From Macrostomum hystrix (Eukaryota > Animalia > Platyhelminthes): a stretch of 64,000 bases of DNA. Both the position numbers and the translations under genes were made by a program. The notes below the pieces were generated by a model. It was not told where the DNA came from and did not search any database. It saw nothing but the letters and a program-made list of their open reading frames with translations. Location: positions 2,852,001 through 2,916,000 of the forward strand of contig CATNEN010000008.1 in NCBI GenBank assembly GCA_950097015.1. The letters are read 5' to 3'. How positions within the stretch are numbered: the stretch's first letter is position 1; every line of letters starts with the position of its first letter. This document shows positions 31,613-63,370 of this stretch, one piece after another.

Positions 31613-31637
31613 GATTCCGACACCACACATCCCCCAC

Positions 31638-31775
31638 TCAGGTTACGTAGACCCCAGCAGCAGCGATCTCCAGCTTGTACTCAGAGTTCTCATACTCAGT
31701 GGCGGGGTCGAGCGGCCCACCTGGCGTCGCAGCCGGCTGTCCGGCCTCAGCAGCAGTTTCTCCGCATCGGCTCAC
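31638..31775 (-). CDS. Gene A last exon, cytoplasmic tail ...PATEYENSEYKLEIAAAGVYVT*
   Basis: Phase-0 acceptor ctccag|GTG. The three-Tyr motif is conserved in gene C. Confidence 0.85.
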   Translation of the reverse strand: MSRCGETAAEAGQPAATPGGPLDPATEYENSEYKLEIAAAGVYVT

Positions 31776-34700
31776 CTGGAGGTCGCCAGCCAAAGTTTTC
31801 ATGCAGGCTTAAATATGATGTCTGAGCATGGAAGGCTTCTCAAACGAAACTTACCATCGCAACTTGCTCAATTTCGCCCTGAGCACGCCAACAAAGAGCT
31901 CGTCGACTCTGCAGAAAAGACTGAAAAAACGAAATAAAATAGATGCGATGCGGGACCATCTGGAAATGAGAACAAAGCACCAATTCATCTTCACCAATCG
32001 CATCTCTTACTCTCTTGACAATTCCTGCAATGATGGCTGCGGCAATGGCTGCTGTCCCGAATCCGCAGCCGAATGCAATCGCCATTGGCACCATTGCTGA
32101 TGCACTGCAGCAGCTCACCAGAGTCAGTTTGCTTTGAGCAGCCTGGACACCAGATGCCCCTGGAGCAATCTGTATTTCAGTGCAGTTGACGATGGCGCCT
32201 TTGAGCTCTCGGTATGCGGCATTGTCAAACTTCCACGTGCTGATGAGTACAGTGCCGTATTCATCAGGCACCTGCGAAATCGCACCGCACATAAATCAGC
32301 ATCTGACTGAGGCGAAATTTTCAAGCGGTGAAGAAACTCACTTGAGTCAGACGCGTGAGTTTCAAGACGCCAACTTCACCAGCATCAGCGCTGCATTTGT
32401 GCTCTGGCACCGAGTGAGATGAGGCTGATCTGAACTCCACCGTCACATCAGACAGACTCGTGCAATTGTGCGAATTCAGCAGGGAAATCGTCAAGTCTGA
32501 CCACGCAGCTGCAGATGGAGATGGATAGTCTTGAATAGCCCTTGGATAGTCTTGAAAGCTTACTTACAAAGTCGCATGTTCAAATCTTGTGAAACAAAGA
32601 GAAGCACAGTCCTGCGATCTACCTTTTGATTTGCCGCAAGTCCAACTGGCACTATTTTCTGAGACGTAGCTGAATGGGCTGGTGGTCGATCCATTGTGAG
32701 CAGCAGCGCAATGAACTGTACCCCTGCTTGCATCCAGCCAGCGATCTCCAACACTAACAAGACGCCACAGACTAACTCTTGAGCCGTTCTCGCTGGTGTT
32801 CTGAAATTTCGAAAAGCTAGAAAATTTTGCATTCCATTGCGTGCTCACAATTCAATATTGCTCATAGAATGAAGTCAAAACTCACAGTTGATAGCAGTAT
32901 GGATTGTTTAATGACTCCACCACCTACTGCATGGCACCTGTGCTCAGGTAGCGGGTGAGATTCTGAGGAGCTAAAGCTGACGATGATGTCTGACACAATG
33001 GTGCAATTGTGCGAATTCAGCAGCGTGACTGACACGTTTGACGGCGGGTCTGCAGGGAGGTCCGAGGCGCTTCGCTTTTACTGTTAGTTTTACACAGAGA
33101 GATGTGACACCTAACACAGCTGGGCAATGTGTACTGTCTATGGCACAAGTCACAGCTATAGCTACGACTTGGCAGCGAGAGGCTGTGTACAACTGTTCAG
33201 TCCGTGGACTGGGGGCCATCACGCGATCCTAAATTTCTATCCCAGCTAATTCTGGTACCGATTTGACAGCTGGGTGAACCGAATTGGGGAATCAAGGGCA
33301 CATATGATATCTCATGGGTTGAGATTCGAACTTCGGACCTCTTGGCCAGGAGTCCGACGCTCTAACTGCAGGTCTACAAGCTCTAAATAGATGCGTATCA
33401 AGCACTGCTATGAGTGTGGAATGTTGTCGGGAAGTATTAGACCACATGAAGTACGTACCCAAAGGACTGGCTGTGCATACCGTATTGTTCATTCTAGCAT
33501 GAGCGACAGTAAAATTTATAGCCAATTTTCTTACAAAGCACGGTGACCGATGCTGACTTGGCAGCAGATCCGGCTCTGCAAGTGTAGTTGCCTGAGTGCT
33601 GAGGCTCTGCTCTGAGAATCTCTACTAGCCTGCGATTTTCTCCAGTCTCCGAGCAGCTGCCGTTAGGAAAGCAGAGCTGAACTTGCCCCTGCACTCTGCA
33701 GCTCTCAGAGCCGCAGTGCAATGAGCATTCAACTGTGAAGCTTGTGTTTGCTACCACAGTCAAGTCTGGAGTCGATGCTGCAACGAAAGAGCTGTCACTG
33801 TTAGTCAAAACTGAGTATCCGTGCTCAAGGAAGCTGAGAATGGATGTGAGACTCACACAGCACAGTGACAACCGACTCCACTTCTGTTGAGTTCAGCTTG
33901 CACTTGTAGACTCCAGCGTCCTGAGGAGTTGAGCTCAAAATTTCCACAGACGCTTTTCTGGTGCAGCTGCCGTTCGGAAGACAGACCTGCGGCTCATGGA
34001 AAGTCTTGGAGTCAGGGTAGAGCAGTGAGCAGTTCACAGAGAGCTTTGAACCATGCGCGACCACTTGGTCAGGTGTTGCGGCTGCAGTTGATGGGATATG
34101 GCTTGTGAATGAGGATTCTATCAATCAAAAGCGTCACAACAATGGCTCACAGCCACTCATAAGTACATGGGATTGATCGCTTTGGTTTTTAAATTAGCAT
34201 TCGCATTTCCAAAATTGGCCTTCTCATGGGCACTTCTCAAAACATGTTGGTTGAAGACTAAATTAGGATACGTAATTATCCATGTACTCGCGAACAGAAC
34301 TCCGGGCTCAAAATCTGACGTATCATTTGATCATACTAATCATTTAGTGTTATGAAAAGCAGAGCCAGATGAACTCGCAGAAGCCGAGACTCACACAGCA
34401 AAGCCACAGCGGTCCGCTTCATGACATTCCCAGCAGCGCAGGTGTATTCACCTGCGTTCCCTGGCTGCGCACGGACAATGCTCAGATTCTTGCCCGACAC
34501 GTGGCTACCGTTTGGCAGGATCAACTGAAGGTCACCTAAATTCGGGCATTGCTCCGAGCTGTTGCAGTGCAGCCAGCAGCTCACAGAGAGCTCGGAGTTC
34601 ATCGCGACCACTTGGCTTGGAGAAGAGGCTTAAATGTTTTTTACGTTTACAAGATTAGCCGAAAGGTGCACTGCAATATTTCTACCTGAGAATCAATATT

Positions 34701-37700
34701 CCTTGATACTTTCAGCAGCTTGTCAGAGGATCTGGGGTCATTGGGAAACTCACACAGCACGGAGACTGTGGTCGACAAACTGCGGTCACTGGAGCCGAGT
34801 CTGCAAGTGTACTTTCCAGAATGGACAGGCTGCGCTTTGCTAATCAGCAGCGTTTGATTTTCTGAGCACCTGCCATCTGGAGAGCAGATCCGCATCTGGC
34901 CTGAGTCTGTGCTCAAATCGGTGACATTGCAGTGCAGCTCGCAGCTCACAGTGAAGCTGGAGCTCTCAGCCACCAGCTGAGGACTCGCGACTCCTGCGGT
35001 TGTCAGGAGCGGGAAGAGCTCTGTTGAAGCATTGCGGTTTTCAGTCTCGACTATTTTAGCTCTGACTTCTTGGATTGAAAACTCATAGTATTGTTTAGAC
35101 ACCATAGAAGCTAACTTAATAGAATTGCATTGACAGTATCAAAGCTAACTCAATCCAATTGCATAGACACTATCAAAGCTAACTCAATCCAATTGCATGG
35201 ACAGTATCAAAGCTAACTCAATCCAATTGCATAGACACTATCAAAGCTAACTCAATCCAATTGCATAGACACTATCAAAGCTAACTCAATCCAATTGCAT
35301 AGACACTATCAAAGCTAACTCAATCCAATTGCATAGACACTATCAAAGCTAACTCAATCCAATTGCATAGACAGTATCAAAGCTAACTCAATCCAATTGC
35401 ATAGACACTATCAAAGCTAACTCAATCCAATTGCATAGACACTATCAAAGCTAACTCAATCCAATTGCATAGACACTATCAAAGCTAACTCAATCCAATT
35501 GCATAGACACTATCAAAGCTAACTCAATCCAATTGCATAGACAGTATCAAAGCTAACTCAATCCAATTGCATAGACACTATCAAAGCTAACTCAATCCAA
35601 TTGCATAGACAGTATCAAAGCTAACTCAATCCAATTGCATAGACACTATCAAAGCTAACTCAATCCAATTGCATAGACAGTATCAAAGCTAACTCAATCC
35701 AATTGCATAGACACTATCAAAGCTAACTCAATCCAATTGCATAGACAGTATCAAAGCTAACTCAATCCAATTGCATAGACAGTATCAAAGCTAACTCAAT
35801 CCAATTGCATAGACACTATCAAAGCTAACTCAATCCAATTGCATAGACACTATCAAAGCTAACTCAATCCAATTGCATAGAAACTATCAAAGCTAACTCA
35901 ATCCAATTGCATAGACACTATCAAAGCTAACTCAATCCAATTGCATAGACACTATCAAAGCTAACTCAATCCAATTGCATAGACAGTATCAAAGCTAACT
36001 CAATCCAATTGCATAGAAACTATCAAAGCTAACTCAATCCAATTGCATAGACAGTATCAAAGCTAACTCAATCCAATTGCATAGACACTATCAAAGCTAA
36101 CTCAATCCAATTGCATAGACAGTATCAAAGCTAACTCAATCCAATTGCATAGACACTATCAAAGCTAACTCAATCCAATTGCATAGACAGTATCAAAGCT
36201 AACTCAATCCAATTGCATGGACACTATCAAAGCTAACTCAATCCAATTGCATAGACAGTATCAAAGCTAACTCAATCCAATTGCATAGACACTATCAAAG
36301 CTAACTCAATCCAATTGCATAGACACTTTCAAAGCTAACTCAATAGAATTGCATCGACACTATCAAAGCTAACTCAACTGAAAATTTAGGCAAGGCAAAG
36401 AAAAAATTGAAATGATTAATTACTTATCGATACTGTCTCAACTATGAGGTCCGCAAAGCTCATGTATTGATCGTTCTCAGCTTTCGCATTCGCAGCCCGT
36501 CTCAAAAGCAGCTGTCGCACCTGCAGTTCAGAGATTCATTCACCGGTGTGTCTGCAATAATTAATTGGCATTGCTTCACTCACTCACTCACCTCAGCAAC
36601 GCAGCTGACAGTGAAGATTTCACCTGCTGAGATTGTCCCTTCCTTCCGAGTCTGGCCGCACAGTCTCCAGAGACTCCTAGACTCATTGAACAGTCTGCTC
36701 ATGGTCTTCGAGGCGCAGTGGTCGCCAGAGAAGATGGCCTTGCTGCTGCTTGAAGTGAAGATATCTATGCTCCGTGCTCTCTTGTAGGCATCGTGATACT
36801 CACCTGCATCTGAAATTCCGAGTTCGTTTCGAGTTGCTTCGACCCAACTCCACAACCTTCATTTATTGACCAAGGACTACTGGAATAGACTAACTACTAA
36901 CTAACTCATACTACTACCAGTACTAGCTAACTACTTGGTCCTTCTTGTTGTCTCGAAATCCGAAAATATCGCAATGTTGTTTTATTAAAGAAGTAGAAAA
37001 CAGCATCCCTATTGGCCCGCGCAATAAATAATTATACTTGACAACACTCAAATTAGTTTTGCAGTCCTTAATTTAAAATCTGAGTCCCTCATTAACTGCT
37101 CAAATCTTTCTTTAATTGCATTCAGCGAAACAAAAAAAATTTCTATTTCACAAATTTTACTTTCTGAAGATCACTTGAAGATCTTCTTTGATTAGAAAAA
37201 GGCAATGGTGACATTGTGTAGACTTTCACTCACCACTCCTGCCCACCACAGTGACTGATCTGATGAGAACTGGCTCAGCCAGCTGCACTGCGAACCAGTG
37301 AAATCCTCCGTCTGCTTGGCTCTGCTCAGAGCTGTGGAAGAACCACCATTTGCCCCCAGCTTGTCTATCCACCTCTGCATCTCGGGGATGAAAACAAGTG
37401 GAAGGGTGATCTGTAAAGTAGGATGACTGCCAAGATGCCAATATGCGGCTTCTGCGGATCGCGAATTTACCTGCAGTTTAAATTAGGAGAGAAAAGTTTT
37501 TGTCATTGAAAAGTGCACCAGAAAGCATGGCGAGATGTTCGCTTGACACGAAACGGCCTTAAACGAATTCTTAACAGAATGACTACTCACACACAACTGA
37601 GACTGAAGCTGACTTCACCGCCCTGCCGAATCTGCAACTATAGTTCCCGGAGTGCCAGGGCTGCGCGTTCGTGACATTCAGCAGCTGGCCTCGGACGCAG

Positions 37701-40557
37701 CTGCCAGTCGGAGGGCACAGCTGCAGATGACTCGAGTTGCAGCTCAGATCCGAGGCATTGCAGTGCAGTGAGCACCTCACCGAGAACTGGCTGCTCACAG
37801 GCAACAGTTGGTCTGGCGATGAAGCTGAAATATAGTTTAAGGATATGAAGGCCTTGGACTGTGAGCAGTCAGTTCTATTCTGAAAGTCAGGAGAAGGTGA
37901 TGAAGCTGAAATATTGGTTAGGGATATGAAGGCCTTGGATTGTGAGCAGTCAGTTCTATTCTGAAAGTCAGGAGAAGGTGACGAAGCTGAAATATTGGTT
38001 AGGGATATGAAGGCCTTGGACTGTGAGCAGTCAGTTCTATTCTGAAAGTCAGGAGAAGGTGATGAAGCTGAAATATTGGTTAGGGATATGAAGGCCTTGG
38101 ATTGTGAGCAGTCAGTTCTATTCTGAAAGTCAGGAGAAGGTGACGAAGCTGAAATATTGGTTAGGGATATGAAGGCCTTGGACTGTGAGCAGTCAGTTCT
38201 ATTCTGAAAGTCAGGAGAAGGTGATGAAGCTTACACAGCACGGTGACAAACGATCGAACTTCCGCTGACTGATGCCTGCATCGGTACAAGCCGGAGTGTG
38301 AGGGTCGAGCCCTAGCTATCCTGATTGAGGAGCCTGGAGCAAGGCTGTCGTCAGGAAAGAAGAGCTGCAGAAGCTTCTGGGAGTCGGCAGTGTCATTGAA
38401 GTGCAGCACGCAGTCCAGTCCCAGACTCGACTTCTCGGCAACAACTTGATCCGGAGTCAGAGCTGCAGATGGCCAGTGAGTTTCTATGAGCACTGCACCA
38501 CAGGTAAAATGCATTGTAAATAGAGTTCACTCACTGAGCACACTGACACGGCTCACAGCGACTGCTGAGTCCAGTCTGCACTCATAGCTCCCTGACTGGG
38601 CTGCAGCCACGGCATCGATCCGGAGCGTGGCGTCATCGATGCAGCTGTTGCTAGGAGAGCACAGCCGCGGTCGCCCGAGTTGACCAAAGTCAGCACAATG
38701 AGTTGCATTACCGCAGTGCAGAGAGCAGCTCAGACTGATACTGGAGTTCTCAGCGACCACTTGATGGGGAGTGGAAGCTGGAGAGGAGGGGCTCGAGAAT
38801 GTAAATGCTATCCATAATCTCAAAACAGCACTTTAAAGAGTACTCATCTGAGAATGTGAGCACTCACACAGAACGGTGACGGCAGTCGGTATCGCCAAAG
38901 GACCAGCCCTGCAAGTGTAGACTCCTGAGTCCCCAGGCTGAGCTTGAGCAACTTCCAGCCGGTTCTCAGAGATGCAGCTGCCGTTCGGAGGGCAGAGCCG
39001 CAGGTCGCTTGAGCTCGTGCTCAGCTGCTGCGAGCCGGTGCAGCGCCTTGAGCAGCTCACTGTGAAGCTGGAGTTCTCAGCCACCAGCTCAGGACTCTCC
39101 GCCCCTGGAAGGCGGATGGCGTAATTGAATGAACTCATGCAATGCCAGTTCCCTGCTACATCTCCAAAAACTGCCAAATGAACTCATGCAATGCCAGTTC
39201 CCTGCTACATCTCCAAAACCTGCCGAATGAACTCATGCAATGCCAGTTCCCTGCTGCATCTCCAAAAACTTCCAAATGAACTCATGCAATGCCAGTTCCC
39301 TGCTGCATCTCCAAAAACTGCCGAATGAACTCATGCAATGCCAGTTCCCTGCTGCATCTCCAAAAACTGCCGAATGAACTCATGCAATGCCAGTTCCCTG
39401 CTGCATCTCCAAAAACTGCCGAATGAACTCATGCAATGCCAGTTCCCTGCTGCATCTCCAAAAACTGCCGAATGAACTCATGCAATGCCAGTACAAAAGC
39501 TGGTTACTCAAGGACAGAGTCTGAAGGCCGAGGTCTGCGAAGCTCATGTAGCCGTCGTCTTCCGATGCATTTCTTCTGAGCAGCAAATGCCAAACCAGAA
39601 ATGCGGACTCCTCAGTGCCCTGAAACGGAGTGAAGGCCATCATTCTTGGTCTGCATGACATTGCTGATTTCAGCATTTCCCCACCTGACTGGCGCAGTCC
39701 ACGGTGAAAATTTCACCGGCTGAGATGGCTCCCTCCTTCTGAGTCTTGCCGCATCGCGTCCAGTCACTCAGGGAGTTGTGAAACTCAGCGCTGATGCTTG
39801 TGGAGCTGCAGCGGTCACCGAAGAAGATTTGACTGCTGCGGTTCGACACGAACACTTCAATGTCTTTGGCTCTGGCATAGGTACAGTTTTTGTCATCTGC
39901 AATTGAGAAGCCAGACCTGCTCAATCGTCTCAAAGTGGCATTCTTAGTGTTTTGAGACTAGATCTCTGAGCTGAAAAGAGAATGTGACTCACCCTCTCTG
40001 CCCTTCACAGTTACCGATCTGACAAGCACTGGCTTTCGAAGCTTCACAGCGAACCAGTGAAACCCGCTGCGTGATTGGCTTTTGCCATCACTGTGGAAAA
40101 AGTTATAACTTTTTGTTTTATCATTCAACTCCTCTGATTCCAAAGACTCGCTTTTGTTGTGGAAGCACGAGTTCAGGAAGCTGGAGGACTGCCATGCGCT
40201 GGTAGTGTGCTTCTTCCTAACTCGAAAGTCGCCTAAAATTTATTATTTGTGAATGGCTGAGATTTGGTTAAGGATACGGAGGCCTTGGATTGTGAGCAGT
40301 CAGTTCTATTCTGAAAGTCAGGAGAAGGTGACGAAGCTGGAGGCTGGATGACTGCCATGCACTGGTAGTGTACTTCTTCCTAACTCGAAAGTCGCCTAAA
40401 GTTTATCAAGCAGGCCACGATTGGTAAATGGCTGAGATTTGTAGCTAGAGTGAGCTTGGAGTACTGAGAATCCCACTCTGAGAATAGACTCACAGTCTGC
40501 AGCGGCTCTGGCACACACAGATCCCAGCAGAAGGAGAATCAATGACGCTGTCGCCAT
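31638..40557 (-). CDS. Receptor gene A: SP-[F-type-lectin-like + 4 Ig]x2 + 2 split Ig-like stalk domains + TM + Tyr tail (about 1341 aa, 21 exons)
   Basis: Exons: 40557-40494 (SP MATASLILLLLGSVCARAAAD). Lectin 1: 40232-39993, 39896-39685, 39619-39508. Ig: 39104-38868, 38777-38535, 38462-38235, 37824-37591. Lectin 2: 37470-37234, 36809-36592, 36520-36424. Ig: 34993-34754, 34628-34395, 34081-33857, 33777-33535. Stalk: 33049-32886, 32800-32623, 32508-32342. Stalk+TM: 32271-32011. Tail: 31908-31855, 31775-31638. All introns are GT-AG with matching phases. The total is 4026 nt with no internal stop. Confidence 0.85.
33150..33390 (-). mobile_element. Probable second tRNA-derived SINE in the gene A intron between Ig8 and the stalk
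   Basis: Minus-strand head GCAGTTAGAGCGTCGGACTCCTGGCCAAGAGGTCCGAAGTTCGAATC is tRNA-like with a B box GTTCGAATC. The body extent is approximate. Confidence 0.5.
35130..36375. repeat. 34-bp minisatellite TATCAAAGCTAACTCAATCCAATTGCATAGACAC (gene A intron)
   Basis: Highly homogeneous units. Confidence 0.95.
37821..38230. repeat. 81-bp x5 tandem repeat spanning the 3' splice site of gene A Ig4
   Basis: Units start at 37821, 37902, 37983, 38064 and 38145. Each contains atatttcag|CTTC on the minus strand. Confidence 0.9.
39127..39490. repeat. 49-bp minisatellite (gene A intron between lectin 1 and Ig1)
   Basis: GAATGAACTCATGCAATGCCAGTTCCCTGCTGCATCTCCAAAAACTGCC, about 7.5 copies. Confidence 0.95.
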
Positions 40558-42080: not shown

Positions 42081-43059
42081 ACTTGGGACCCTGGGATCGA
42101 TAAAAACGAAATACTAAATAATAATACTACAATTCAGTCAAAATACTGAAAGCAATGGGACCCGATCAGAAACTGCAGGTAGACTGCCTCTATTGCATGA
42201 TATACAGAAAAGAAGCTTCCAGTTCTGGCCATCCCTATCTCATCGCCCAGACTCCATTATATCTAAGCTTATTCGGGACCCGGAATACAGCGAAATAGGC
42301 ATTGCAACAAAAATGAGTAGTGTTGTACTGCGAAACTGTTCTCTGAGCTCAAAGACAAAGTCTGTTAAAATTCACTGGGAAAACTTTCAATGCGATTTCC
42401 TGGGACACTGGAGACAGAGGGTGCGAAATTCTGCACAGCTCAGCCATTTCTACTGCAGTCTCAATAGAGATTTCTGCCGTGAAAAATATCAATTATGTTC
42501 AGTTCAAGCTTCAGCAATAGCTTATCTTGCATTCTACACTGTGCGATGGTCTCCATTGCATAAACAAACCCTGTCGGATGCACGCGCACTGCAGCCTGGT
42601 CGCACACAGGTGTTGCTATTAATTGACCACAGTTGCCGGGTTTAGGTATCTCAGCGGACTGACGAGACGTCCAAACTCGACACACCAGATGCACCGGAAG
42701 TCCATCTACTAAGCCCCGAGTCACACAGAACGCAGGACAATCATCGAAATATTAAGGATGCTAGAGTTGCATGTAAACAATGGGGCCAGAAGAAAGTAGA
42801 AGATTTTCTAACCTTCCAGTGCTGGAATAGCGATCAAATTAACATTTTTCAAGGTTTCCAAGGAGTTTGAATAGCATGGTTACCCCTTTCTCAGGCAGTG
42901 TACTGATCGCGCGGCTTTGGGGTTTTGCATTCGAGGGCGAATATTGCAAGACAACCCCTGAGCCATCTGCCCACGGTTTCGCCACAAAAGAATTGGGCAT
43001 CGCCGCGGATTCGAGCCCAGGAACCTCGAACACCTGATGACTTCAGTCATCACAGATTT

Positions 43060-43195
43060 TTGTCCGCCGCCTCAGCCGCATTTTCTCCGCATCGACTCAC
43101 CGGGAAGTGGCCAGCCAGAGTTGTCTAGCTTGACTTTGCCGTCTGAGCACAAGGGCTTCTCAAGCTTCTCAAACTCATCATGAAAACTTGCTCAC
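43060..43195 (-). pseudogene. Orphan remnant of an A-type cytoplasmic-tail region
   Basis: Aligns to 31738-31875 (for example TTTCTCCGCATCG(A/G)CTCACC and GGCTTCTCAAA...AACTTGCTCA). The acceptor AG is replaced by CG. Confidence 0.65.
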
Positions 43196-43197
43196 TA

Positions 43198-43310
43198 AGT
43201 TTCGGGTTTCGTGGAGTTTCGGGTTTCGTGGAGTTTCGGGTTTCGTGGAGTTTCGGGTTTCGCGGAGTTTCGGGTATTGTGGAGTATCAGGTTTTGTGAA
43301 GTTTCGGGTT
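43198..43310. repeat. 17-bp repeat GGAGTTTCGGGTTTCGT, about 6 copies
   Basis: Read directly. Confidence 0.9.
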
Positions 43311-44142
43311 TCCTGGAGATAGCGGTAGAGTGAAGCCAATATGGCTAAGGTGGTTCATTACTAAACAATCATTAAAAGCTTATGCCACAACTGTCCAGAT
43401 ACTTGTGTTACAAATCAAACAATGTTTTCTATTGTATTACACAATATATTTTTCTACAGTATCCACAAGCAGCGAAATAAGGGACAATTGCATGATGAGT
43501 TTCATACACAGAAAACTGGAATAGATCCAGAATAAAAGTGTTAAAAAGACGAGCGAGTAAATATTATTTTTAAATAATTGCCCACAAGGTAAGACCAGCA
43601 ATGTGGCCTGCCTTCTCCTTGAGTAATAAATATTTTCAAAACTTTTCTGTCGTCAGTACTTGAATGAACACTTCGTACATAAAAACTATAAATAGCTTGC
43701 AAATTTAAGCTTGTGATGCGGATTGAGAGAGCATAAAAATGGTAGCGACCCTGATAGCCGTTGACGTGTTATAAAAAGTTTCAGTCATGTTAACTCGCAA
43801 TTACTTCCCTATTTGGGGGAGGACAGGAGAAATTCGGGATCTAACTAATTAATCAGGTGTTTGGGAAGGCAGCAGACAACCAAGGTCTCGCATAATGAGC
43901 GAATAATTCAATAAGGGCTGTGCCTTAATACATTTTAAAGGTATGCCCAAATATCTGTCATCAGTATGCCTTGGTGTCGTTGATAATCGATAGAAATATT
44001 GCAGTATAATAGTAATAATAATAATAATAGTCATAAAGTAACAGTAATATAAAAATATAGTAAGATAATATGTTAACAATAAACATTTAACAAATACTGC
44101 ACTGCACAGTCTCAAACCCATCTCTGGCTGATCACGAAACTC

Positions 44143-44283
44143 TCAGTCGCCCACAGCAACAATCTCAATGTACTCGGTGCAGCAGTCGCTGTCTGTGTCC
44201 TGCCCCCCCGCAGCAGCAGCAGCAGCAGTCGCTGGTTTGCACACAGTCAAGTAGCAGCACTCGGACTCGAAGCCGCTGGTTGT
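44143..44283 (-). CDS. Gene B last exon: TTSGFESECCYLTVCKPATAAAAAAGGQDTDSDCCTEYIEIVAVGD*
   Basis: Acceptor ctctgatttcag|ACA, phase 0. Contains YLTV (YxxV) and TEYIEI (TxYxxI). Confidence 0.8.
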   Translation of the reverse strand, partial: TTSGFESECCYLTVCKPATAAAAAAGGQDTDSDCCTEYIEIVAVGD

Positions 44284-47200: not shown

Positions 47201-48129
47201 TTGCTAAATCATCGAAATTTAAGAATTTCCCTTCCACAACAATGTGTCCATAGTAAAAGACCCGAACTCACTCAGCTGCACAGTCTGAAGCCTGAGATCT
47301 GCGAAGCTCATGAAGTCGGTAGGATAAGATGACACAGTGATGTTCCTTCGCAGCAGCAAGTGTCTCACCTGGAGTTCAGATGAGATCTCAGTGGGATCCA
47401 GAACTCAACAGAGCACAACTCAAGGCACAGAGCAGGTCTCACCTCCGCTGAGCAGTTCACGGTGAAGTTCTCACCAGCCTCGATACGCGCCTGCTTGCTC
47501 ACCGTCAGGCCGCACAGTCTCCAGAGCTGCTGAGACTTGTTAAACTGGCTGCTCATGTTTCTTGAGCTGCAGTGATCACCTGAGAACAGCTGACTGCTGC
47601 TGCTCGATGTCCAGATCTCGATGTCTCTGGCTCTCGCGTAGACATCTGTAGCGCTATCTAAAAGTGAGAACTTCACGACTAAGCAGTGGAAGCTGAAGTG
47701 CATGGAAAAAATTGAGCAGTGACTCACCCTCTCTGCCCTTCACAGTGACCGATCTGATGAGCACTGACTCATTCAGCTGCACTGCGAACCAATGAAATTC
47801 TCCGTCTGCATGGTCTTTGTTTTTGCTGTGGAAGAACCTGTAGCTGTAAGGTTTGTCCTTTACAACGTTTTCCTCATCAGTGTAGTTTCTGTTGCTGAAG
47901 CAAGTCGGTCCGTCATCGAAGGACGACTGCCAGGAGCTGAGCACTCGGCTCCTGCGAATCAGGAACTCACCTGCAGTGTGTGAAAATGGAGTGCTGTAAT
48001 GCCTTCAAACATTTTTTAGTTGAAACTGAAAACAAAACTAAAACACTCACAGTCACCCATGACGCCAGTCATTGCTGAGAAGAGCAGCAACAGCAGCAGC
48101 AGCAGTCGTATGAGCAAAGCAGATACCAT
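44143..48129 (-). CDS. Receptor gene B: SP + F-type-lectin-like + 3 Ig + split Ig-like stalk + TM + ITIM-like/ITSM tail (about 667 aa, 11 exons)
   Basis: Exons: 48129-48051 (SP MVSALLIRLLLLLLLLFSAMTGVMGD). Lectin: 47970-47728, 47657-47443, 47368-47272. Ig: 47171-46938, 46854-46621, 45448-45215. Stalk: 45127-44967. Stalk+TM: 44883-44623 (TM LTTFTIAVSATIVFVVVLVGAACCLLI). Tail: 44555-44451, 44283-44143. The total is 2004 nt with matching phases and no internal stop. Confidence 0.87.
45708..46290. repeat. 31-bp minisatellite TTGTGTCAGCTGAGGTTTTGTGCTGTGGACA (gene B intron between Ig2 and Ig3)
   Basis: Read directly. Confidence 0.95.
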
Positions 48130-49672
48130 CTGAGCTCAGTATGCAATCCGCTAGAGAATAGTCTCACAAAACTTTCTGAGCAGTCTTCAATTCGCACTGC
48201 CTGCAATTCAGTTCTTTTCCGCTACTTAAGCAAGTGGCGGGTAAGACGTCAATGCTGCTTACCTCTCGGCCTGAGATTTACAAGCCGAAAGTTCTAAATT
48301 TGCTGTCTCAGCACTTTAAATATCCAGCAATATGTTTCTCGCTAAGTAAACCAATTCATACTCCGGCTATTTCTTGTAAGACAGGCAGTGAAATAATAGA
48401 ATATTTGACGCCTATTATTGGAGAAATGACCCTGAAAGTGTTGTTTATTGCATGTGTCGCTTGACTGACCAGCTGAAGCAGCTAGTTTCCAGGGCTACTT
48501 GGCTTGAAATGCGGCAAATGATGAGTCTGTCGTTGAAGAGATTGAGCAACTGAAGATGTGAATTGTTTCATCATGACACTTGTCATTCTCGTAGAACATT
48601 ATAAGAAGCATGTCTCGCTTCTTGAATGAGCTCATTCCATCGGCTGGTCTCCTCTTTCATGCTCACTTTTTGTGCGGGTGAAATTTTGAATCTCTCGGCT
48701 ATAAAACGCGACTTGACTACAACAGTCATTAACAAGTTCGCTGTCAGGTTCTGTGCAGCGTCTCAAGCAGTGCTTTTTCACTGCAAATTCATGCCCGAAA
48801 TGGGATATTAAACTTTAAAGCAGTACCTCATTTCATGAACTTGTACCCCATCCAGCAGTTTAAAAAAATTGAAAATCCATTATCCACAGTGCCATCTTCT
48901 GCTGGCCATTTAAAGTTATTTGCTCACGACGATCAGTCACAACACAACTCGCGCGTATATAAAAAGTACATGAATTAAATGTTTTAGTATGCTAAAATAT
49001 CGTCTACTCGTAATAATGTATTCGTCTTTTCGTCAGCATTATTTGACAGTCAAATAAAAAAGCAAATTAATTGCAGATCTTTTTTACCTCCCGAGTAATA
49101 CCCCAAATCGGCCAAGTAGTACCCAATGGGTACTGGTAAAAAACCCTGGTCTCAAGCCTCGATGCCTCGATGCCTCAATGGCACGAATAAAGATTGAGCA
49201 ATTGTCAGCCAGCAGACAGTCGACAAAACGCCGAGTTCGAATCTGTCAGCGTCGGTAAGCTTCTCATGCACCGGCTGCGCACAACATCGACTTGCTGTAC
49301 GGCGGCACGACTGTACAACGACTTCGGTCAGAGACGGACGCAAAGGTATGGCGCGAAGGTATGGGTCATGGCGTACACACAACCAATGAGGAAAAGGCAG
49401 CAGATCAGCGCAAAGCATCATTTGTCTAACTTTGCGAAGGTGAGAGCACTATCTAGCAGTTTATTATTGTATGAAATGTAGGCTCGATGCAGAGAGTACC
49501 AGTTTTAGTATAAGTTTATAGCATTTGATAGTGATGTACAATTTATTTTGTTAAAATAAAGCTCTAGCTTTATTCAGCAACTGCACGCGATCAGTTAGTT
49601 CAGTATTGTAATGAATTTCCGAATATTGCATTCGAATATTGCTAGATATGTTAGATATTTCAAGGTTTTACA

Positions 49673-50645: not shown

Positions 50646-50759
50646 ACTGCTGACATGAACAGAAGCACTCAGCACTATATTGTGATTGTGATGGTGCGGC
50701 TTCATGACCTGTTGTGTTCAAGCCCGCTCATAACACTGCTTAAATACTGAAGAACCATA

Positions 50760-51370
50760 TCCATCTCAAGGCTGATCATATCCACCTCAAGGCTGCTCAT
50801 ATTCTCCTCAAGGCTGCTCATATCCACCTCAAGGCTGCTCATATCCACCTCAAGGCTGATCATATCCACCTCAAGGCTGATCATATCCACCTCAAGGCTG
50901 ATCATATCCACCTCAAGGCTGATCATATCCACCTCAAGGCTGATCATATCCACCTCAAGGCTGCTCATACCCACCTCAAGGCTGCTCATGCCCACCCCAA
51001 TACTGCTCATATCCACCTGAATGCTGCTCATACCCACCTCAAGGCTGCTCATACCCACCTCAAGGCTGCTCATTCCCACCTCAAGGCTGCTCATACCCAC
51101 CTCAAGGCTGCTCATACCCACCCCAATACTGCTCATATCCACCTGAATGCTGCTCATACCCACCTCAAGGCTGCTCATACCCACCTCAAGGCTGCTCATT
51201 CCCACCTCAAGGCTGCTCATACCCACCTCAAGGCTGCTCATACCCACCTCAAGGCTGCTCATACCCACCTCAAGGCTGCTCATACCCACCTCAAGGCTGC
51301 TCATACCCACTCCAATACTGCTCATATCCACCTGAATGCTGCTCATACCCACCTCAAGGCTGCTCATATT
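50760..51370. repeat. 21-bp minisatellite ATCCACCTCAAGGCTGCTCAT
   Basis: Read directly. Explains the MSSLEVG ORF. Confidence 0.95.
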
Positions 51371-52149
51371 CACCTAGAAGCTGCTCGTGTCTACAATTTA
51401 AGAGTAGGGCATTGTTTGTCAGTTCAGCGTATCTTGAAATTATCACTCCTCATGCAGGCAACGACCTTCGATCAGGTCACATAAACTCCAGCTGCGGTCT
51501 CCAGCTTGTACTCAGAGTTCTCATACTCTGTGACGCCATCCGCAGATCCAGCAGCACCAGCTACGAGTTCGGCGTCAACTGTCCGTGTCCCGTCTCGACC
51601 CACCTGAAGTACAAGAGGGTCAGCTGCAACAATTGACTTGAGCAAATATTTCTACAGACACAAAACTCTCATCTCATGACAGTCAGCTCACCATGCCGAT
51701 CATCTCAGCCGCACGGTGACTTGGGTCCAGGCGAGGTTGTCCCCAGCAGAACTGAGCAGTCTGAGAGCCCCTGGCTGCTGCCACCTGAAATAGCTTTAAG
51801 AGTTTGAGAATCTTCTGACTTCAGCACAGACAGCAAACTGGAGCACTGCATTGAGGGCTCACTCTGCAGAACACGCAGGCCATGACGACCGCAGTGACGA
51901 ATCCTGACCCGAATCCAGAGGCGAAGTACTTCAGTCCGTCGTTCTCTTCAGGCAGCCCGGATGTCGGAGAACAGCTGAGCTGAGCTCTGGCACTGCGGAC
52001 GGCCTTAAACGGAACTCCTGTCGGCAGAGTCTGAGTAGCTGTGCAAACGATGCTGAGAACACTGCTCAGTTCCTCACTAGGGACATCGAGCTCTGCGAGT
52101 GACCACAGGCTGACGGCGCCTTCCATGCCTGATTGCTGAAACACCGAGT

Positions 52150-52350
52150 TACTCAGTGAGTCATCGATCAGTCATCCAATGAGTCATCGGTCAGTCACTC
52201 AATGAGTCATTGGTCAGTCACTCAGTGAGTCATTGGTCAGTCACTCAGTGAGTCATTGGTCAGTCACTCAGTGAGTCATTGGTCAGTCACTCAGTGAGTC
52301 ATTGGTCAGTCACTCAGTGAGTCATTGGTCAGTCACTCAGTGAGTCATCG
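52150..52350. repeat. 23-bp minisatellite TCAGTCACTCAGTGAGTCATTGG (continues at 56088-56250 beyond the retrotransposon)
   Basis: The same unit flanks both sides of the gypsy element. Each unit contains TGAGTCA. Confidence 0.9.
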
Positions 52351-55300
52351 TGTTGTGTAGTGATTGAAGTAGAAAACAGATTTTTTTTAGATTCCAAATC
52401 GAGAAGCTTTGAGAGCTTATGGTCGCTCTGTTGCCGTATATTTATAGGCTAGGATGTTAGATATCGAAGGTTCTAGAAATATTCCAGGTGCTGCCGTCGG
52501 TCAGTCGGCACGCAGCGCCCATCGTCTTGACAATCCGCAGCGGCACCGAGAGCCGCGTTCCGAGCTTGCCCCGTCGTGTTGGACGCTGCACCCGAACCCA
52601 GTCGCCGGCGCGCAGTGCGGTCCGTGTAGGCTGCCGTCCGCTGCTGGCGCCCTTGGATTTGCTGGGCCATCTCGGTATGCGCAACCGCGGTGTCCTTAGA
52701 CGGGGACAGGAGAGACAGGGCTGTGCGCCATCGCCTGCCCAGCATCAGCTCCGCCGGGCTCTTCCCAGTCTGGGCATGTGGAGTGCTGCGGTAAGCCTCA
52801 AGGAACTGCAGCAGCGCGTCTTGCATCGGAATGTTCGCCGCCCTGGCCGCTCGGATGCTGTCCATCAGCGTCCTGTTGAGTGTCTCGGTCTTGCCGTTGG
52901 TGCTTGGACGGTAAGGGCTGGTCTTCAGGTGCTGAATGCCCCTGAATACCTCAGAAATCCATCGCCGAACTGTGCTCCGTTGTCGGTGAGGACCTTCTCG
53001 CAGAGGCCCCAGCGTGCGAAAAGGCTGCGCAGCACCTTGCAGATCGTCTCAGTGGTGATGCTTGAAGTTGCAAAGACCTCTGGCCACTTGCTGTGCAGAT
53101 CCGTAATGACCAGTAGGACACGTGATGGTGCCGGTGCCGCCTGCAGCTCGCCCACGATGTCGATGGCGATCTCTGTCTACGGTGTAGTCGGCCATGGCAG
53201 AGGCTGCAGCGGAGCCGGTCGCAGCTTGAAATTCTTCTCCGCTGTCTCGCACGCGCCGCAGTCCCGGACGAACGTCTCGACATCGGCGTCCATCTTTGGC
53301 CACCAGGCGAACTCGAGGAGCTGCTGCTTGCTGCTGCTGCACCACCCCCGGATGTCCAGAATGCACCGCCTCCAGAAGCTCGCGCCGCAGCTGCTGGGGA
53401 ATGATGGCTCGTTCTTGGAAAGCCAGGCAGGCGCCGTCCTGCCAGACGCTGAGGTGCTCGCGGACCTTGAAGTACGGCCGCAGCTCGCTATGCGGTGTAG
53501 AGCTCCAGTTGCCGCTTGTGACGTGCTGAATCACCTGTCGCAGAACCTCATCCTCGGCTGTGGCTATCGCTAGCTGCTGCGGGGTAACAACCCGTACCTT
53601 AGGCATCGCAGTCCGGTAGCTGGACGATGTTCATGTCGGACCCGCAGCTCCACCTTGACAGCATGTCGGGCACGAAGTTGCGGTTGCCCGGCAGGTATCG
53701 CACGTGGAAGTCGTACTGTTGAAACCGGTCGCACCACCGTTGGATGCGCAGCGGCCGATGTCCGGTGCCGCTGGGTCCCAGCAGGAGCTGGCGCAGCGCT
53801 TGGTGGTCGGTCCGCAGCTCGAAATGGCGCCCGTACAGGTAGTAGTGCCACTTCTCCATGGCCCTCAGGATCGCCAGCGCTTCTCGCTCGTTCGCTGCGT
53901 ATCGCTTCTCTGTCTCGGTCAGGTCTCGGGCGGCGAAGGCAATCGGCCTCTCGATGCCGTCTTGGACCAGGGACAGCTGCGCACCGAGGGACTCTGCACT
54001 GGCGTCGCTAGTGAAGATCGTCTCGGCCCCTGGGTCGAAGTGAGCAAGGACCGGCGGACTACAGATAGCCTCTTTCAGCGTCTCGATCGCCTTCTCGCAC
54101 TCCGTCGACCATTCGAACACCGCGTCGCCTTTCAGCAGAGGCCGCAGTGGCGCCGTGACCTCAGCGAAGTTGGGTACGAACCGCATCAGATAGTTGGCGG
54201 ATCCCAGGAACGCCTGCAGCTCCTTCCTGTTGGTCGGCGGGCGCAGCTGGCTGAAAGCTTTGGTCTGACTCTCAGACGGTCGCATGCCGTCGGCTGAGAA
54301 GATGAAGCCAAAGAACTCAATCTCAGTCCTCCGCAGCTGGCACTTGTCCTTGTTGGCAGTGAGACCGGCGTCCTCCAATCGCTTCAGCAGTGCTCGCAGC
54401 CTCGAGTCGTGCTCGGCTTCAGTTGCTCCGAAGACGATGAAGTCGTCCAGGATGTGCTCAACACCGTGCAGATCAGACACCAGGTCGTCCAGCGTCCTCT
54501 GGAATGCCGCCGGTGCCGAAGCAAGCCCGAACGGAACCCTGCAGTAGCGATACAGACCCTGGTGAGTAATGAATGCCGTCAGGTCACGTGATGACTCGTG
54601 CAGCTTCATCTGCATGTATCCTGCCTTGATGTCGATCTTGAAGAACACGCTGCCTCCGACAGCTTTGATCTTGGCCGAGATTTCGTCCAGCTGCGGCATC
54701 GGGTGCCTCCAGACGGTTCAGCTCCTCGCCGACTTGTTGCTGCCTAGTGAGCGGAAGTCGACGGAGCGGCTGCTGCACTGGTGGCACCGCTGCGTTGATC
54801 CTCGGTTTGTGCAATGCGCCCTTGCAGAGACCGATCGAGCCGCTGAAGACAGTTGGGAACTCTCGCTCGATGTCTACGCTGGCGATTTCGGCGTCGATCT
54901 CAGCTGGCGGCTGCAGTTGCACGTGGAAGCCCAGCTTCTCCATCAGGTCGCGGCCGATAAGGTTCTCGCCAGACCTCGTGACGTGGAAGTCGTGCTGCCG
55001 ACTGTGGTGCTTGACGGGCACTGTTGCGATCCCAGCTAGGGCGATCAGCTTCCTGCCGTAGCCTCATCGACGACGGTCTTAGGCGAATGTCGCCCAAGCT
55101 TCGCGCAGTGGCCTCGTTCAGCAGGGACACCATGGCACCGCAGTCGACCATCAGGCTGACGATCTTTCAAATGCTGCCAAGCAGAAGCTCGGCGCGGAAC
55201 TCGTCGTTGCCGTTGACTGCGTAGATCGTCTCTTCCGCGCTGACCTGCATTGCATTGCTGCGGCAGCATCAGCTGAAGTGATTCAGTTTGCCGCAGTTGT

Positions 55301-56088
55301 TGCACTTCTTGCCGTGCGCGGGACATTGGGCTTCGGAATCATGGCTGCGGCCGCATCGCTGGCAGGATCCTCCGGCTTGCTGCCCCGGCTTCTTCTTGGA
55401 CGGAGCGCCATGGTGACCTCGGGGTCAGGCCTCCTGCACAGCCTGGACGTTCCCTGAAGAGCCGGCTGCTGCCATCGCCTTGCTGCCTGCCGCTGCCTCC
55501 TCGATAGTCGTCGCGATCACGATGGCTTGGTCCAGTGTCAGCCTGGCGGCGTCCTCAGTCAGCAGGCGCTCACTAATCCGGCTGCTGCTGGTCTTCTGGG
55601 CCAGCTGGTCGCGGATCATCTCGTCAGTCATTGCTCCGTAGTTGCAGGTTGCTGAGAGCTCGCGCAGTGCTGCGACGAACGTGACTGCGTCCTCTCCGGG
55701 CAGCTGATGTCGCTCCCGGAAATCGGTGACGCGCCAACATCACGTTTGGCCTGTCGCCAAACACAGTCGTCAGCAGGTCGCGGGTTTGCCAGAAGGTGTG
55801 GCCGTCGACAATCGCGTTGTGTGCCCCTGGCAATCCGCTGCCCTTCGAAACCGAGCAGGTGCAGCAGCATGTTGGGGCTCCTCTTTGCCAGTCGCGTAGC
55901 TTCCTCTGTTGGAGCTTCGCCCTCTGCCGGCCATCAGTCCAGATCTGCGCCGCTTGGCAATAGATATCGAAAGTGTCGAGCCATCGATTCCATGGAACTG
56001 CTGGAGGTCCGCTTGCCGGCAGGTACGGTGTCGGTGGGCTAACGTTGAGGGCCATCCTCGTCGCCAGTTGTTGTGTAGTGAATGAAGT
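52351..56088 (-). mobile_element. Degenerate Ty3/gypsy LTR retrotransposon (gag-PR-RT-RH-INT) in a gene C intron
   Basis: The LTR 3' end ...CACTACACAACA occurs at both 56069-56088 and 52351-52370. PBS TGGCGACGAGG is at 56056-56066 and gag ATG at 56055. Motifs: protease LMVDCGA; RT KIDIKAGY...PFGLASAPAAFQR...ILDD; RNase H TSDAS...EREALA; integrase HSGHPG, DLHSKWPEV, LTDNGAQF. There are several frameshifts, an RT N-terminal deletion and both LTRs are truncated. Confidence 0.92.
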
Positions 56089-58377
56089 CATTGGTCATTC
56101 ATTGGTCAGTCATCGAATGAGTCATTGGTCATTCATTGGTCAGTCATCGAATGAGTCATTGGTCAGTCACTCAATGAGTCATCGGTCAGTCACTCAATGA
56201 GTCATCGGTCAGTCAGACAGTGAGTCATCGGTCAGTCACTCAGTGAGTCATTGTTTAGTAATTCACTGAGTGCATTGAAACCCACCTGTGAAATGAGTCG
56301 CAGTGATTTCTTACGGACTACTCCAACATCACAGCTGCAGCTGTGCTCAGGCATGGGCTGAGCAGCTGAGGATCTGAACAGCACGGATGCGTTTAAAAGA
56401 TTCTTGCAATTCGCATTGTTGGGCAACGACAATAAAATTGACACACTCGATGGTGGGTCTGCATGTGAGGTAAATATTTTCATTAGATTTTGAAAGCAAT
56501 GTTGCAGATGGAAGTCATGCAGCTAACTCACAGAGCACGGTGACTGAGGTCTGCTTGCTGACAGAACCAAGGCTGCAAGAGTACTTTCCAGAGTGATCAG
56601 GCAGAGCTTGAGCCACTGCTGTCTTGTGTTCTGCAATGCAGGTACCGTTCGGAAGGCAGAGCTGGAGTCCGCTAGAGTTTGAGCACAGCTGTGAGTTGTT
56701 GCAGTGCAGCTCGCAGCTCACAGTGAAATTCGAGTTGATGGCCACCACCTGAGCCACGGAGGCCGCTGAAAAATTTAAGTTACCATTGAAATTTCGAACT
56801 CAAATTGTGCACTTCCTGCTTGAGAAATTACTTTAATATTAAACTCACTCAGCACACTGACACTGGATGTGTTCGCAACCGAGCCGAATCTGCACCTGTA
56901 GTCACCTGAGTGCTCAGGCTGAGCACTGCCAATGTGCAGCTCATGGCCGTTTATGCAGCTGTCGTTGGGAGAGCACAGCTGCAGCTCGCTTGAGCTCGAG
57001 TTGAGTTCTGCTCCATCGCATTCCAGCCAGCAGCTCACGCTGAACTTTGAGCTCTGAGGCACCAGCTGAGGCGCTGAGGTTTCTGGAGATTTACAAATCC
57101 TCCAATCGACATTGCTAAATCATCGAAATTTTAGAATTTCCCTTCCACAACAATGTGTCCAAAGTAAAAGACCCGAACTCACTCAGCTGCACAGTCTGAA
57201 GCCTGAGATCTGCGAAGCTCATGTAGTCCTCATAGCTGGAGAAGTCGCTTGCTGTGATGTTCCTTCGCAGCAGCAAGTGTCTGACCTGGAGTTCAGATGA
57301 GATCTCAGTGGGATCCAGAACTCAACAGAGCACAACTCAAGGCACAGAGCAGGTCTCACCTCCGCTGAGCAGTTCACGGTGAAGATCTCACCACGCTGGA
57401 TTTGCTGCTGCTTGCTCACCGTCAGGCCGAGACTTGTTAAACTGGCTGCTCATGTTTGTTGAGCTGCAGTGATCACCTGAGAACAGCTGACTGCTGCTGC
57501 TCGATATCCAGATCTCGATGTCTCTGGCTCTCGGGTAGACTTCTGTAGCTCTATCTAAAAGTGAGAACTTCACGACTAAGCAGTGGAAGCTGAAGTGCAT
57601 GGAAAAAATTGAGCAGTGACTCACCCTCTCTGCCCTTCACAGTGACCGATCTGATGAGCACTGACTCATTCAGCTGCACTGCGAACCAATGAAATCCTCC
57701 GTCTGCTTGGCTTCTGTCTGTGCTGGAGAAGAACCTGTAGCTGTAAGGTTTGTCCTTTACAACGTTTTCCTCATTGGCGTAGCTTCTGTTGCTGAAGCAA
57801 GTCGGTCCGTCATCGAAGGACGACTGCCAGGAGCTGAGCACTCGGCTCCTGCGAATCGGCAACTCACAGTCTGCAGTTGCCATGGAAATAGGCAGTGCTA
57901 GGAGCAGTAGAAGCATTGTGGACTTGGCCAATTCTAGAATCTTGAAATCAGTAAATATTTGTGCTGCTGAAATCAACCCAGAAATGAAAGCGGATTCACT
58001 AACGGCCTATTTGAATGAATCGGCACCTGCGATATGATTTGATGATCCAGAGAGTAACACTGTTCACTGCGAATCTAATAAAAGGCTGACGAGGATCTAA
58101 ATGAAGCTCGCCTATACCTGGTGAAGCAGTTTCCGTACATCAAACCTTCTAGAAGTTCCTCAGTCATAATTGGCACAATCTGCTTTATTTCGAAGCTTGG
58201 ACCACAAATAGTAACAGGATATTGTGACGGTTTCTTAACTTTGTTTATTGCTGATTGCAGTGGACTAGTTTGGATACCGAAGATGGCTGAATGTTAGCAT
58301 TGTTGAGCCTTTCTTAACGCTATTGAAATCATTTGAGGATGTGTGAAACTCCACTAATTGTGGCAGGCTAGCTATGA

Positions 58378-63334: not shown

Positions 63335-63370
<36 letters not shown>

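Follow-up and report, generated by a model that had tools for sequence, protein, structure and literature searches.

A tandem cluster of candidate surface receptors with F-type-lectin-like heads, immunoglobulin stalks and tyrosine-motif tails in the flatworm Macrostomum hystrix

The stretch of DNA analysed here (hereafter, the window) comprises 64,000 nucleotides of the flatworm Macrostomum hystrix (assembly GCA_950097015.1, contig CATNEN010000008.1, positions 2,852,001 to 2,916,000 of the forward strand). It is eukaryotic in character and rich in satellite DNA, and it carries on the minus strand, from 31638 to 57916, a tandem cluster of three paralogous genes (genes 1, 2 and 3) predicted to encode type I membrane receptors with a lectin-like tip. 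Both ends of the cluster are exact, position 31638 being the end of the gene 1 stop codon and 57916 the ATG of gene 3. Four lectin-like units, each visible as a two-part pair of open reading frames (ORFs), start near 57900, 47970, 40232 and 37470, and the same strand also holds 13 immunoglobulin (Ig) units of about 80 residues encoded by one exon each, three transmembrane exons and tyrosine-bearing terminal exons. The order within each gene is a signal peptide, one or two membrane-distal lectin-like domains, two to eight one-exon Ig domains, one or two membrane-proximal Ig-like domains, a transmembrane helix and a short tail, and the Ig exons are all of phase 1-1. A first-pass annotation of the window had described minus-strand paralogs built from a signal peptide, a lectin-like domain, two to eight Ig domains, a stalk, a transmembrane segment and a tyrosine-bearing tail, and every one of these parts was found where it had been placed.

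The features of gene 2 (B in the first-pass annotation), including an exon relic found downstream of it, are the following.

43640-48129, minus strand: gene 2, 589 codons without Ig3; splice joints and exact contigs of the 3' untranslated region (UTR) in runs X4, X6 and X9
48051-48129, minus strand: putative signal-peptide exon, MVSALLIRLLLLLLLLFSAMTGVMGD, then a split Cys codon; its intron is not among the joints listed below
47272-47970, minus strand: lectin-like domain in three exons (47970-47728, 47657-47443, 47368-47272)
46621-47171, minus strand: Ig1 (47171-46938) and Ig2 (46854-46621)
45215-45448, minus strand: Ig3, a 90%-identical copy of Ig2
44623-45127, minus strand: stalk exon (45127-44967) and stalk-end/transmembrane exon (44883-44623), with the helix LTTFTIAVSATIVFVVVLVGAACCLLI
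44143-44555, minus strand: tail type 1 in two exons (44555-44451, 44283-44143), reading …ECCYLTV…CCTEYIEIVAVGD and stop, with 27 residues from Tyr to Tyr
47658-47727, 47369-47442, 47172-47271, 46855-46937, 45128-46620, 44556-44622 and 44284-44450, minus strand: introns supported by contig joints
43068-43194, minus strand: decayed copy of a tail-type-2 last exon, VSRCGENAAEA and then stop codons, with 74% DNA identity to 31738-31870

The protein would consist of a signal peptide, a lectin-like domain of about 185 residues, Ig1 and Ig2 with an optional Ig3, an Ig-like stalk of about 110 residues, a transmembrane helix and an 84-residue tail of type 1, followed in the gene by the 3' UTR. Contigs of four public runs were placed on positions 42800-48300, and CT..AC joints, which correspond to GT..AG on the minus strand, fix the seven introns listed above in contigs of X4, X6 and X9. 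X9 is an RNA run of a related organism, whereas X4 and X6 are runs of unrecorded type, which were taken as transcript contigs because of their spliced joints and because their depth is zero over 45560-46479, the central part of 45449-46620, the 1.17-kb intron that parts Ig2 from Ig3. No RNA run was returned by a search with the full length of gene 2, while the unrestricted search brought up runs under codes, and two of these show the behaviour of RNA. Mismatch-free contigs also cover the unique 3' UTR (43643-43959), so the gene 2 locus itself is transcribed; at least this gene of the cluster is therefore transcribed and spliced. Ig3 is skipped in transcript contigs that join 46621 to 45127. 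The joints also settled the shape of the head, whose final strands (VRHLLLRRNITVSSYPTDFMSFADLRLQTVQL) are encoded by an exon of their own, 97 nt long (47272-47368), the domain thus having three exons and not two; a read-through of the lectin ORF to 'RPALCLELCSVEFW…stop' was discarded, since the RNA joints make that stretch an intron. For the splice junctions proposed by the first-pass annotation, this means that those of gene 2 have RNA support at seven introns, while those of genes 1 and 3 are set by sequence logic alone. A tandem array of 31 bp x 20 (45681-46307) separates the duplicated Ig2 and Ig3 exons.

Gene 1 (A in the first-pass annotation) is the longest member, and its model was assembled from splice consensus, phase and homology.

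31638-40557, minus strand: gene 1, 20 exons, a modelled open frame of 1,323 codons, GT..AG at 19 of 19 introns
40494-40557, minus strand: signal-peptide exon, MATASLILLLLGSVCARAAAD, then a split Cys codon
39508-40232, minus strand: lectin-like domain 1 in three exons (40232-39993, 39896-39685, 39619-39508)
37591-39104, minus strand: Ig1 to Ig4, one exon each, phase 1-1
36424-37470, minus strand: lectin-like domain 2 (exons 37470-37234, 36809-36592, 36520-36424)
33535-34993, minus strand: Ig5 to Ig8
32342-33049, minus strand: membrane-proximal Ig-like region, with the first domain (33049-32886 and 32800-32623) and the first half of the second (32508-32342)
32011-32271, minus strand: stalk-end/transmembrane exon, with the second half of the second Ig-like domain, the helix MVPMAIAFGCGFGTAAIAAAIIAGIV and then KR
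31638-31775, minus strand: last exon, tail type 2, ending …ATEYENSEYKLEIAAAGVYVT and stop

Read in this order, the predicted protein has a signal peptide, a first lectin-like domain, Ig1-4, a second lectin-like domain, Ig5-8, two membrane-proximal Ig-like domains, a transmembrane helix and a 45-residue tail of type 2. The frame stays open over all 20 exons, and this, together with the uniform phase of the Ig exons, bears out the consistent splice phases that had been claimed for the cluster. Ig4 joins the second lectin-like domain in frame through an intron of 120 nt (37471-37590), whose donor is GTGAGT and whose acceptor is CTGCAG, the phases agreeing. As 120 nt leave no room for transmembrane, tail or signal-peptide exons, and the join is in frame, the two lectin units at 40232 and 37470 would belong to one two-headed gene with eight Ig domains, probably expressed as a single transcript; their assignment to two genes was rejected, there being no transmembrane, tail or signal-peptide exon between them and the frame being continuous. 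The introns of gene 1 have several peculiarities of their own. That between Ig3 and Ig4 contains (37818-38231) an 81-bp tandem repeat in 5.1 copies, 96% alike, with an acceptor site in every copy, in frame and stop-free, so that use of the acceptor at 37986, 37905 or 37824 would lengthen the spacer by 54, 27 or 0 residues. Long tandem arrays occupy 35096-36377 (34 bp x 38) and 39127-39492 (49 bp x 7.5), and in intron 1, at about 40380-40470, the beginning of lectin exon 2 occurs again in part (LGDFRVRKKYTTSAWQSSS…), this being possibly the remnant that had been counted in the first-pass annotation beside the three paralogs.

Gene 3 (C in the first-pass annotation) has the same layout with two Ig domains and carries a retroelement fragment in one intron.

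51472-57916, minus strand: gene 3, with signal peptide and lectin exon 2 (57916-57626), lectin exon 3 (57555-57361), lectin exon 4 (57286-57183), Ig1 and Ig2 (57082-56849, 56765-56532), stalk exon (56458-56286), transmembrane exon (about 52144-51863) and tail-type-2 exon (51603-51472)
52400-56060, minus strand: retroelement fragment of about 3.7 kb in the stalk-transmembrane intron of gene 3, with reverse transcriptase, RNase H and frame-shifted integrase-like ORFs

Its lectin exon 3 lacks 20 bp present in gene 2, between 57430 and 57429, which shifts the frame. If this deletion is not an error of the assembly, gene 3 is in all likelihood a pseudogene. The retroelement matches the Pfam profiles of reverse transcriptase (E 6e-31) and RNase H (E 3e-23); no long terminal repeats were found around it, only an array of the same 23-bp minisatellite on both sides (52147-52348 and 56133-56271). 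The state of gene 3, frameshifted and invaded, the decayed tail exon behind gene 2 and the tandem repeats in many introns are what would be expected if the cluster were decaying duplicated DNA in a satellite-rich region, with long frames that have no present function. Such an explanation is nevertheless very improbable in view of the 1,323-codon stop-free frame of gene 1 over 20 exons, the spliced transcripts and exact-match 3' UTR contigs of gene 2, and the conservation of tail motifs across paralogs and species.

The stalk units had been called Ig in the first-pass annotation, and a profile of the 13 exons does match Ig proteins such as titin, contactins, Fc receptors, DCC and Dprs (E 8e-13 to 1e-8). 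In Pfam, each of the 13 finds Ig_2 (best E 2.3e-6), single exons falling just below the gathering score, and the C…G-x-Y-x-C pattern that carries the B- and F-strand cysteines is invariant. The number of Ig domains in the stalk varies from 0 to 8 among paralogs. The membrane-proximal domain is split over two exons, and its structural model is weak, with a predicted local distance difference test (pLDDT) score of 71 and, in Foldseek, Ig domains of Kirrel3, SYG-2 and nanobodies at E ~0.01, for which reason it is called Ig-like just tentatively.

Beyond the membrane, the helices and tyrosine-bearing tails expected from the first reading of the letters are present, the tails spanning 45-84 residues with no domain within them, the tyrosine blocks being conserved, and no family member having a Pfam kinase match. 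Two tail types can be distinguished. Type 1 is carried by gene 2, by the M. lignano proteins P0004, P0017 and P0001 and by the second gene of an M. lignano tandem locus described below; in it C-x-Y-L-[ST]-V is conserved, as is S-D-(C)-C-T-x-Y/F-x-x-I-V at a distance of 27 residues, while the other positions vary. The immunoreceptor tyrosine-based inhibitory motif (ITIM) has the consensus (S/I/V/L)xYxx(I/V/L) and the switch motif (ITSM) the consensus TxYxx(V/I). The distal type-1 motif, T-x-Y-x-x-I in gene 2, P0004, P0017 and P0001, fits the latter and may be called ITSM-like. In type 2, found in genes 1 and 3 and in P0003, P0006 and P0016, a block of nine residues, YENSEYKLE, is conserved, as is a Tyr that lies three residues from the end of the chain. 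Grb2-type SH2 domains prefer pYxN, a pattern that YEN has. A reading of this tail as an immunoreceptor tyrosine-based activation motif (ITAM) was rejected, since neither YKLE nor YVT has the form YxxL/I. Although the M. lignano proteins are just 44-58% identical to those of the window over the tail, the tyrosine blocks do not vary between them. Finally, the presence of a decayed type-2 exon behind a gene with a type-1 tail implies that tails have been swapped within the cluster.

The fold of the head was approached through P0016:24-216, the head of an M. lignano relative that shares 52% identity with gene 2, modelled from an alignment of 19 family sequences that include the window exons. The model is of fair quality (pLDDT 79, predicted template-modelling score 0.81) and takes the form of a galactose-binding-like jelly roll in Foldseek searches of the PDB, where the fish F-type lectin MsaFBP32 (3cqo) ranked second. 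With VIA-align, applied both to re-examine the first search and in an independent comparison with 48,161 solved chains, 3cqo (Z 11.9) and the eel agglutinin AAA (1k12, Z 11.7) took ranks 1 and 2, both at 19% identity, so the comparison with the eel lectin that had been proposed for this domain came out in its favour; after the fish fucolectins came IFT25, the F-type domains of lectinolysin and SpX, and CBM32 modules at Z 10-11. Among AFDB Swiss-Prot models, eel fucolectins occupied ranks 1-3, 5 and 7 and a Xenopus pentraxin-fucolectin fusion rank 9, and in the AFDB clusters a family member came first, followed by several molluscan 'Fucolectin tachylectin-4 pentraxin-1' proteins. At the sequence level, 1k12 (E 0.075) and 3cqo (E 0.21) were the two best matches of the family profile among 177,635 PDB sequences, the alignment falling on …F-x-H-x…W-x-V-x-L…SVT-x-x-x-R-x-D, the very block that had been recognised by eye, and a language-model look-alike search with lectin exon 2 led to PF22633/PF00754 clusters, mostly molluscan. 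Altogether, no single fold or profile result is decisive, but jointly they identify F-type lectins as the nearest known relatives of the head.

The comparison of genes 2 and 3 offers a view of how the head has changed. A tract of about 1.37 kb (56527-57877 in gene 3, 46616-47977 in gene 2, minus strand), 93.7% identical and with sharp edges, comprises exactly lectin exon 2 through Ig2, and outside it the two genes do not align as DNA. Over the three lectin exons (535 aligned nt) there are 44 differences, 41 of them replacement and 3 silent, with a ratio of replacement to silent differences per site (pN/pS) of ~3.7; in lectin exons 2 and 3 alone, 28 are replacement and none is silent. The two introns within the lectin domain do not differ at any of 144 nt, all introns of the tract differ at 7 of 327, and the Ig exons at 10 of 468 (6 replacement and 3 silent), the excess in the lectin exons having Fisher p values of 1.5e-4 versus introns and 1.6e-5 versus Ig exons. 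The lectin changes fall in four clusters, one of which aligns to residues 47-58 of AAA, where the sugar-binding His52 lies. Since silent sites and introns are unchanged, relaxed constraint in a pseudogene cannot explain these differences. They could come from positive selection on the head, or from patches converted by other paralogs.

Replacement-biased divergence of the head, lineage-specific tandem expansion and a surface architecture would equally suit molecules of reproduction or self-recognition, acting on sperm, egg or female tract or in allorecognition, with a head whose fast change would follow from mate recognition or from conflict between the sexes. Oyster bindin, itself an F-type lectin, is a case of this kind, and F-type lectins are known in fertilisation (PMC12221842). 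This alternative is a serious one, though we regard it as unlikely on balance, given that the conserved tyrosine-motif tails point to signalling over simple adhesion, although adhesion receptors can carry such tails too.

Relatives of the family were sought among 1.84 billion cluster representatives with a HMMER profile of lectin exon 2 (78 positions). The search gave 15 matches, about 10 of them true, and those looked up are M. lignano UniProt entries and one 1.6-kb metagenome contig; P0002, P0010, P0011, P0014 and P0015 were rejected as repeat or bacterial proteins matched over short stretches. Word-based protein searches returned just 3 and 10 proteins, all from M. lignano. These relatives are uncharacterised and bear automatic names such as 'Ig-like domain-containing', 'Sushi domain-containing' or 'MATH domain-containing'. 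The tandem arrangement recurs in M. lignano on a 22-kb stretch (L001, NIVC01002544.1:89160-111382), with at least three members on one strand (10163-21095) and a fragment on the other (2083-2196); the first member alone is annotated (P0017, without Ig), and the second has Ig, stalk and a type-1 tail. The depth of DNA contigs on the exons is 10-30x that of the flanks, in line with a large family. Some M. lignano UniProt models contain odd joins: in P0001 the final coding exon of a gene runs into lectin exon 2 of the gene that follows, P0003 skips lectin exons 3-4, and P0016 has an Ig exon in place of the first stalk exon. They could be either prediction artefacts or exon-level alternative splicing, which would be easy because the phase is uniformly 1.

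Full-text literature searches found no paper on this family in Macrostomum or on an F-type lectin joined to Ig, and the literature searched describes no Ig-plus-lectin receptor family in the flatworm phylum. Reviews of F-type lectins list as partners CTLD, HTLD, pentraxin, CCP, a transmembrane segment and FA58C (PMC5712786, PMC12221842). Look-alike searches did bring up mollusc MEGF10/11-like proteins with an N-terminal PF22633 domain and an Atlas cluster in which PF22633 occurs together with I-set Ig (taxa unrecorded), and these, together with Drosophila furrowed, mean that an F-type head on a membrane protein is not new as an idea. The claim of an undescribed family thus holds insofar as no paper was found and the UniProt relatives are unnamed, and has to be narrowed insofar as membrane proteins with F-type lectin domains are already known (furrowed, PMC5712786). 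What is new is the combination of an F-type lectin fold, an Ig stalk and tyrosine-motif tails, and the lineage-specific family built on it.

Set beside known systems, the head resembles the F-type lectins AAA (1k12) and MsaFBP32 (3cqo) in its jelly-roll fold and in the shared blocks QSS, W-x-V-x-L, SVT-x-x-x-R-x-D and R…EI. Those proteins, however, are secreted, with one to several tandem heads, a full His/Arg/Arg triad, a calcium site and vicinal Cys-Cys, whereas the receptor head is without the conserved His or calcium motif, has the Cys-Cys loop three residues longer and devoid of cysteines, and sits on an Ig stalk with a transmembrane helix and a predicted signalling tail. The CD33-related Siglecs and other ITIM/ITSM Ig receptors share the type I layout, a tip of glycan-reader type and a variable Ig stalk, have tails that may correspond in a proximal Y-x-x-V followed by a distal T-x-Y-x-x-I, and likewise occur in tandem, fast-evolving clusters with alternative tails. 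The Siglec head is nevertheless a V-set Ig domain with a sialic-acid-binding Arg, in contrast with the galactose-binding-like jelly roll found here, and the proximal motif of the flatworm tail has Cys at -2. The description 'Siglec-like by convergence' given to the cluster at first sight is therefore fair as an analogy of layout; the proteins are not Siglecs, having no V-set head, and no common descent is implied.

Among invertebrates, snail FREPs, CREPs and GREPs and amphioxus VCBPs also combine Ig with a lectin-type domain in diversified multigene families, but these place Ig first and the lectin (fibrinogen-related, C-type, galectin or chitin-binding) last and are secreted, whereas in the Macrostomum receptors the order is reversed, the lectin is F-type-like and the protein is anchored in the membrane with a tail. 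Drosophila furrowed (CG9095) and the mollusc MEGF10/11-like proteins with an N-terminal F-type domain are alike as membrane proteins that carry such a domain, with a sugar triad that in furrowed is degenerate as in the Macrostomum head; their spacers, on the other hand, are CCP or EGF repeats and not Ig, their tails differ, and HMMER detects no sequence relationship. Discoidin-domain receptors (DDRs) and neuropilins are type I proteins with a related galactose-binding-like jelly roll in the ectodomain, but the discoidin (F5/8 C) branch scores lower on the head (DDR1 Z 8.7, neuropilin Z 9.1), and these receptors have kinase or other domains and no Ig stalk, whereas the Macrostomum tails are without kinase.

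As a whole, these observations are best explained by a Macrostomum-lineage-specific family of type I surface recognition receptors, a reading to which we assign a probability of roughly 0.5. In such receptors the lectin-like head would bind an extracellular ligand, most likely a glycan, via its variable loops, and the Ig stalk would set the reach of the head from the membrane. Once a ligand is engaged, the tail tyrosines would be phosphorylated and SH2 proteins would dock, and the output would differ between the two tail types. A head that diversifies under selection would point to a changing partner, in the first place non-self, that is, an immune target, and in the second a mate or gamete. 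An immune role should be worded with care, as gamete, mate or self recognition would fit equally well.

A number of points weigh against the receptor reading. The head does not reach Pfam cut-offs, either as single exons or as whole M. lignano relatives, for which only sub-threshold F5/8 type C matches were obtained; the best match is PF00754 (E 0.0084, 16.7 bits versus a cut-off of 28.2), and PF22633 gives 14.5 bits versus 27.8. The structural model is that of an M. lignano relative and not of the window's own protein, and the fold match stands just ~1 Z unit above CBM32 and IFT25. The published F-type motifs are H-x24-R-x-D-x4-(R/K) for fucose and h2DGx for calcium (PMC5712786). Where AAA has His52, within the most variable loop, the family has S, D, K or Q, and the calcium segment reads VKDKP, LNDKT, VLSKP and the like, with no DG conserved. 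The tail motifs are short, the proximal type-1 motif is not a canonical ITIM because of its Cys at -2, and Phe replaces the distal Tyr in one M. lignano copy, the second gene of its tandem locus. The replacement excess in the lectin exons could stem from patchy gene conversion with paralogs, and gene 3 is now a pseudogene. X4 and X6, finally, are of unrecorded type and are identified as RNA solely by spliced joints and an intron depth gap. Concerning the N-terminal domain, what stands of its reading as a fucolectin fold is a jelly roll with F-type lectins nearest; curated F5/8 type C and F-type profiles, a check that had been suggested for it, stay below cut-off, and the sugar and calcium motifs are incomplete. 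The head may thus be described as F-type-lectin-like, divergent and motif-incomplete, and not as a proven fucolectin.

Since neither the His of the fucose triad nor the calcium motif is conserved, fucose binding cannot be assumed, and the fold may have been kept while sugar binding was lost, in favour of a protein or lipid ligand as in the discoidin domains of DDRs, neuropilin b1 or the degenerate furrowed domain. The missing His and calcium motif and the unreached Pfam profiles agree with this possibility, as does the precedent of furrowed, which is without the triad residues and according to reviews is unlikely to bind sugar (PMC5712786, PMC12221842). Most members nevertheless keep R-x-[DE] (GRED in the alignments to 1k12/3cqo and of the family) and a further downstream Arg (Y-x-R), placed after a loop three residues longer than in the fish lectins, and the nearest structures are sugar-binding modules throughout, so that we consider the loss of sugar binding possible but rather unlikely.

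The family of surface recognition receptors might also be given a more specific and distinctly speculative form, namely a paired-receptor system in which the flatworm would have put an F-type lectin head on Ig spacers and converged on Siglecs, KIRs and LILRs. In this system positively selected, near-identical glycan-reading ectodomains would be exchanged by gene conversion between genes with ITSM-type (inhibitory or switch) and YENSEYKLE (Grb2-type, activating) tails. Were this doubtful proposal true, it would mean an invertebrate with a tunable self/non-self glycan sensor.

The surroundings of the cluster are almost wholly minisatellite arrays, both in the flank 1-31000 and in 58000-64000 (for instance 2795-3967, 4300-6900, 12756-14260, 14717-15560, 16164-16730, 17176-18030, 21300-23290, 24745-26030, 30739-31630 and 58509-61517), and tBLASTn found no further family members in these two flanks.

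Tandem expansion, ectodomain exons exchanged between genes with different tails and replacement-biased divergence of the head are hallmarks of arms-race recognition receptors, and the family has them all. Few receptors are known in flatworm innate immunity. Macrostomum lignano is a transgenic model amenable to RNA interference, in which ligand, cell type and signalling partners are directly testable, and the family provides an independent case for how lectin-headed receptor systems of ITIM/ITSM type arise.

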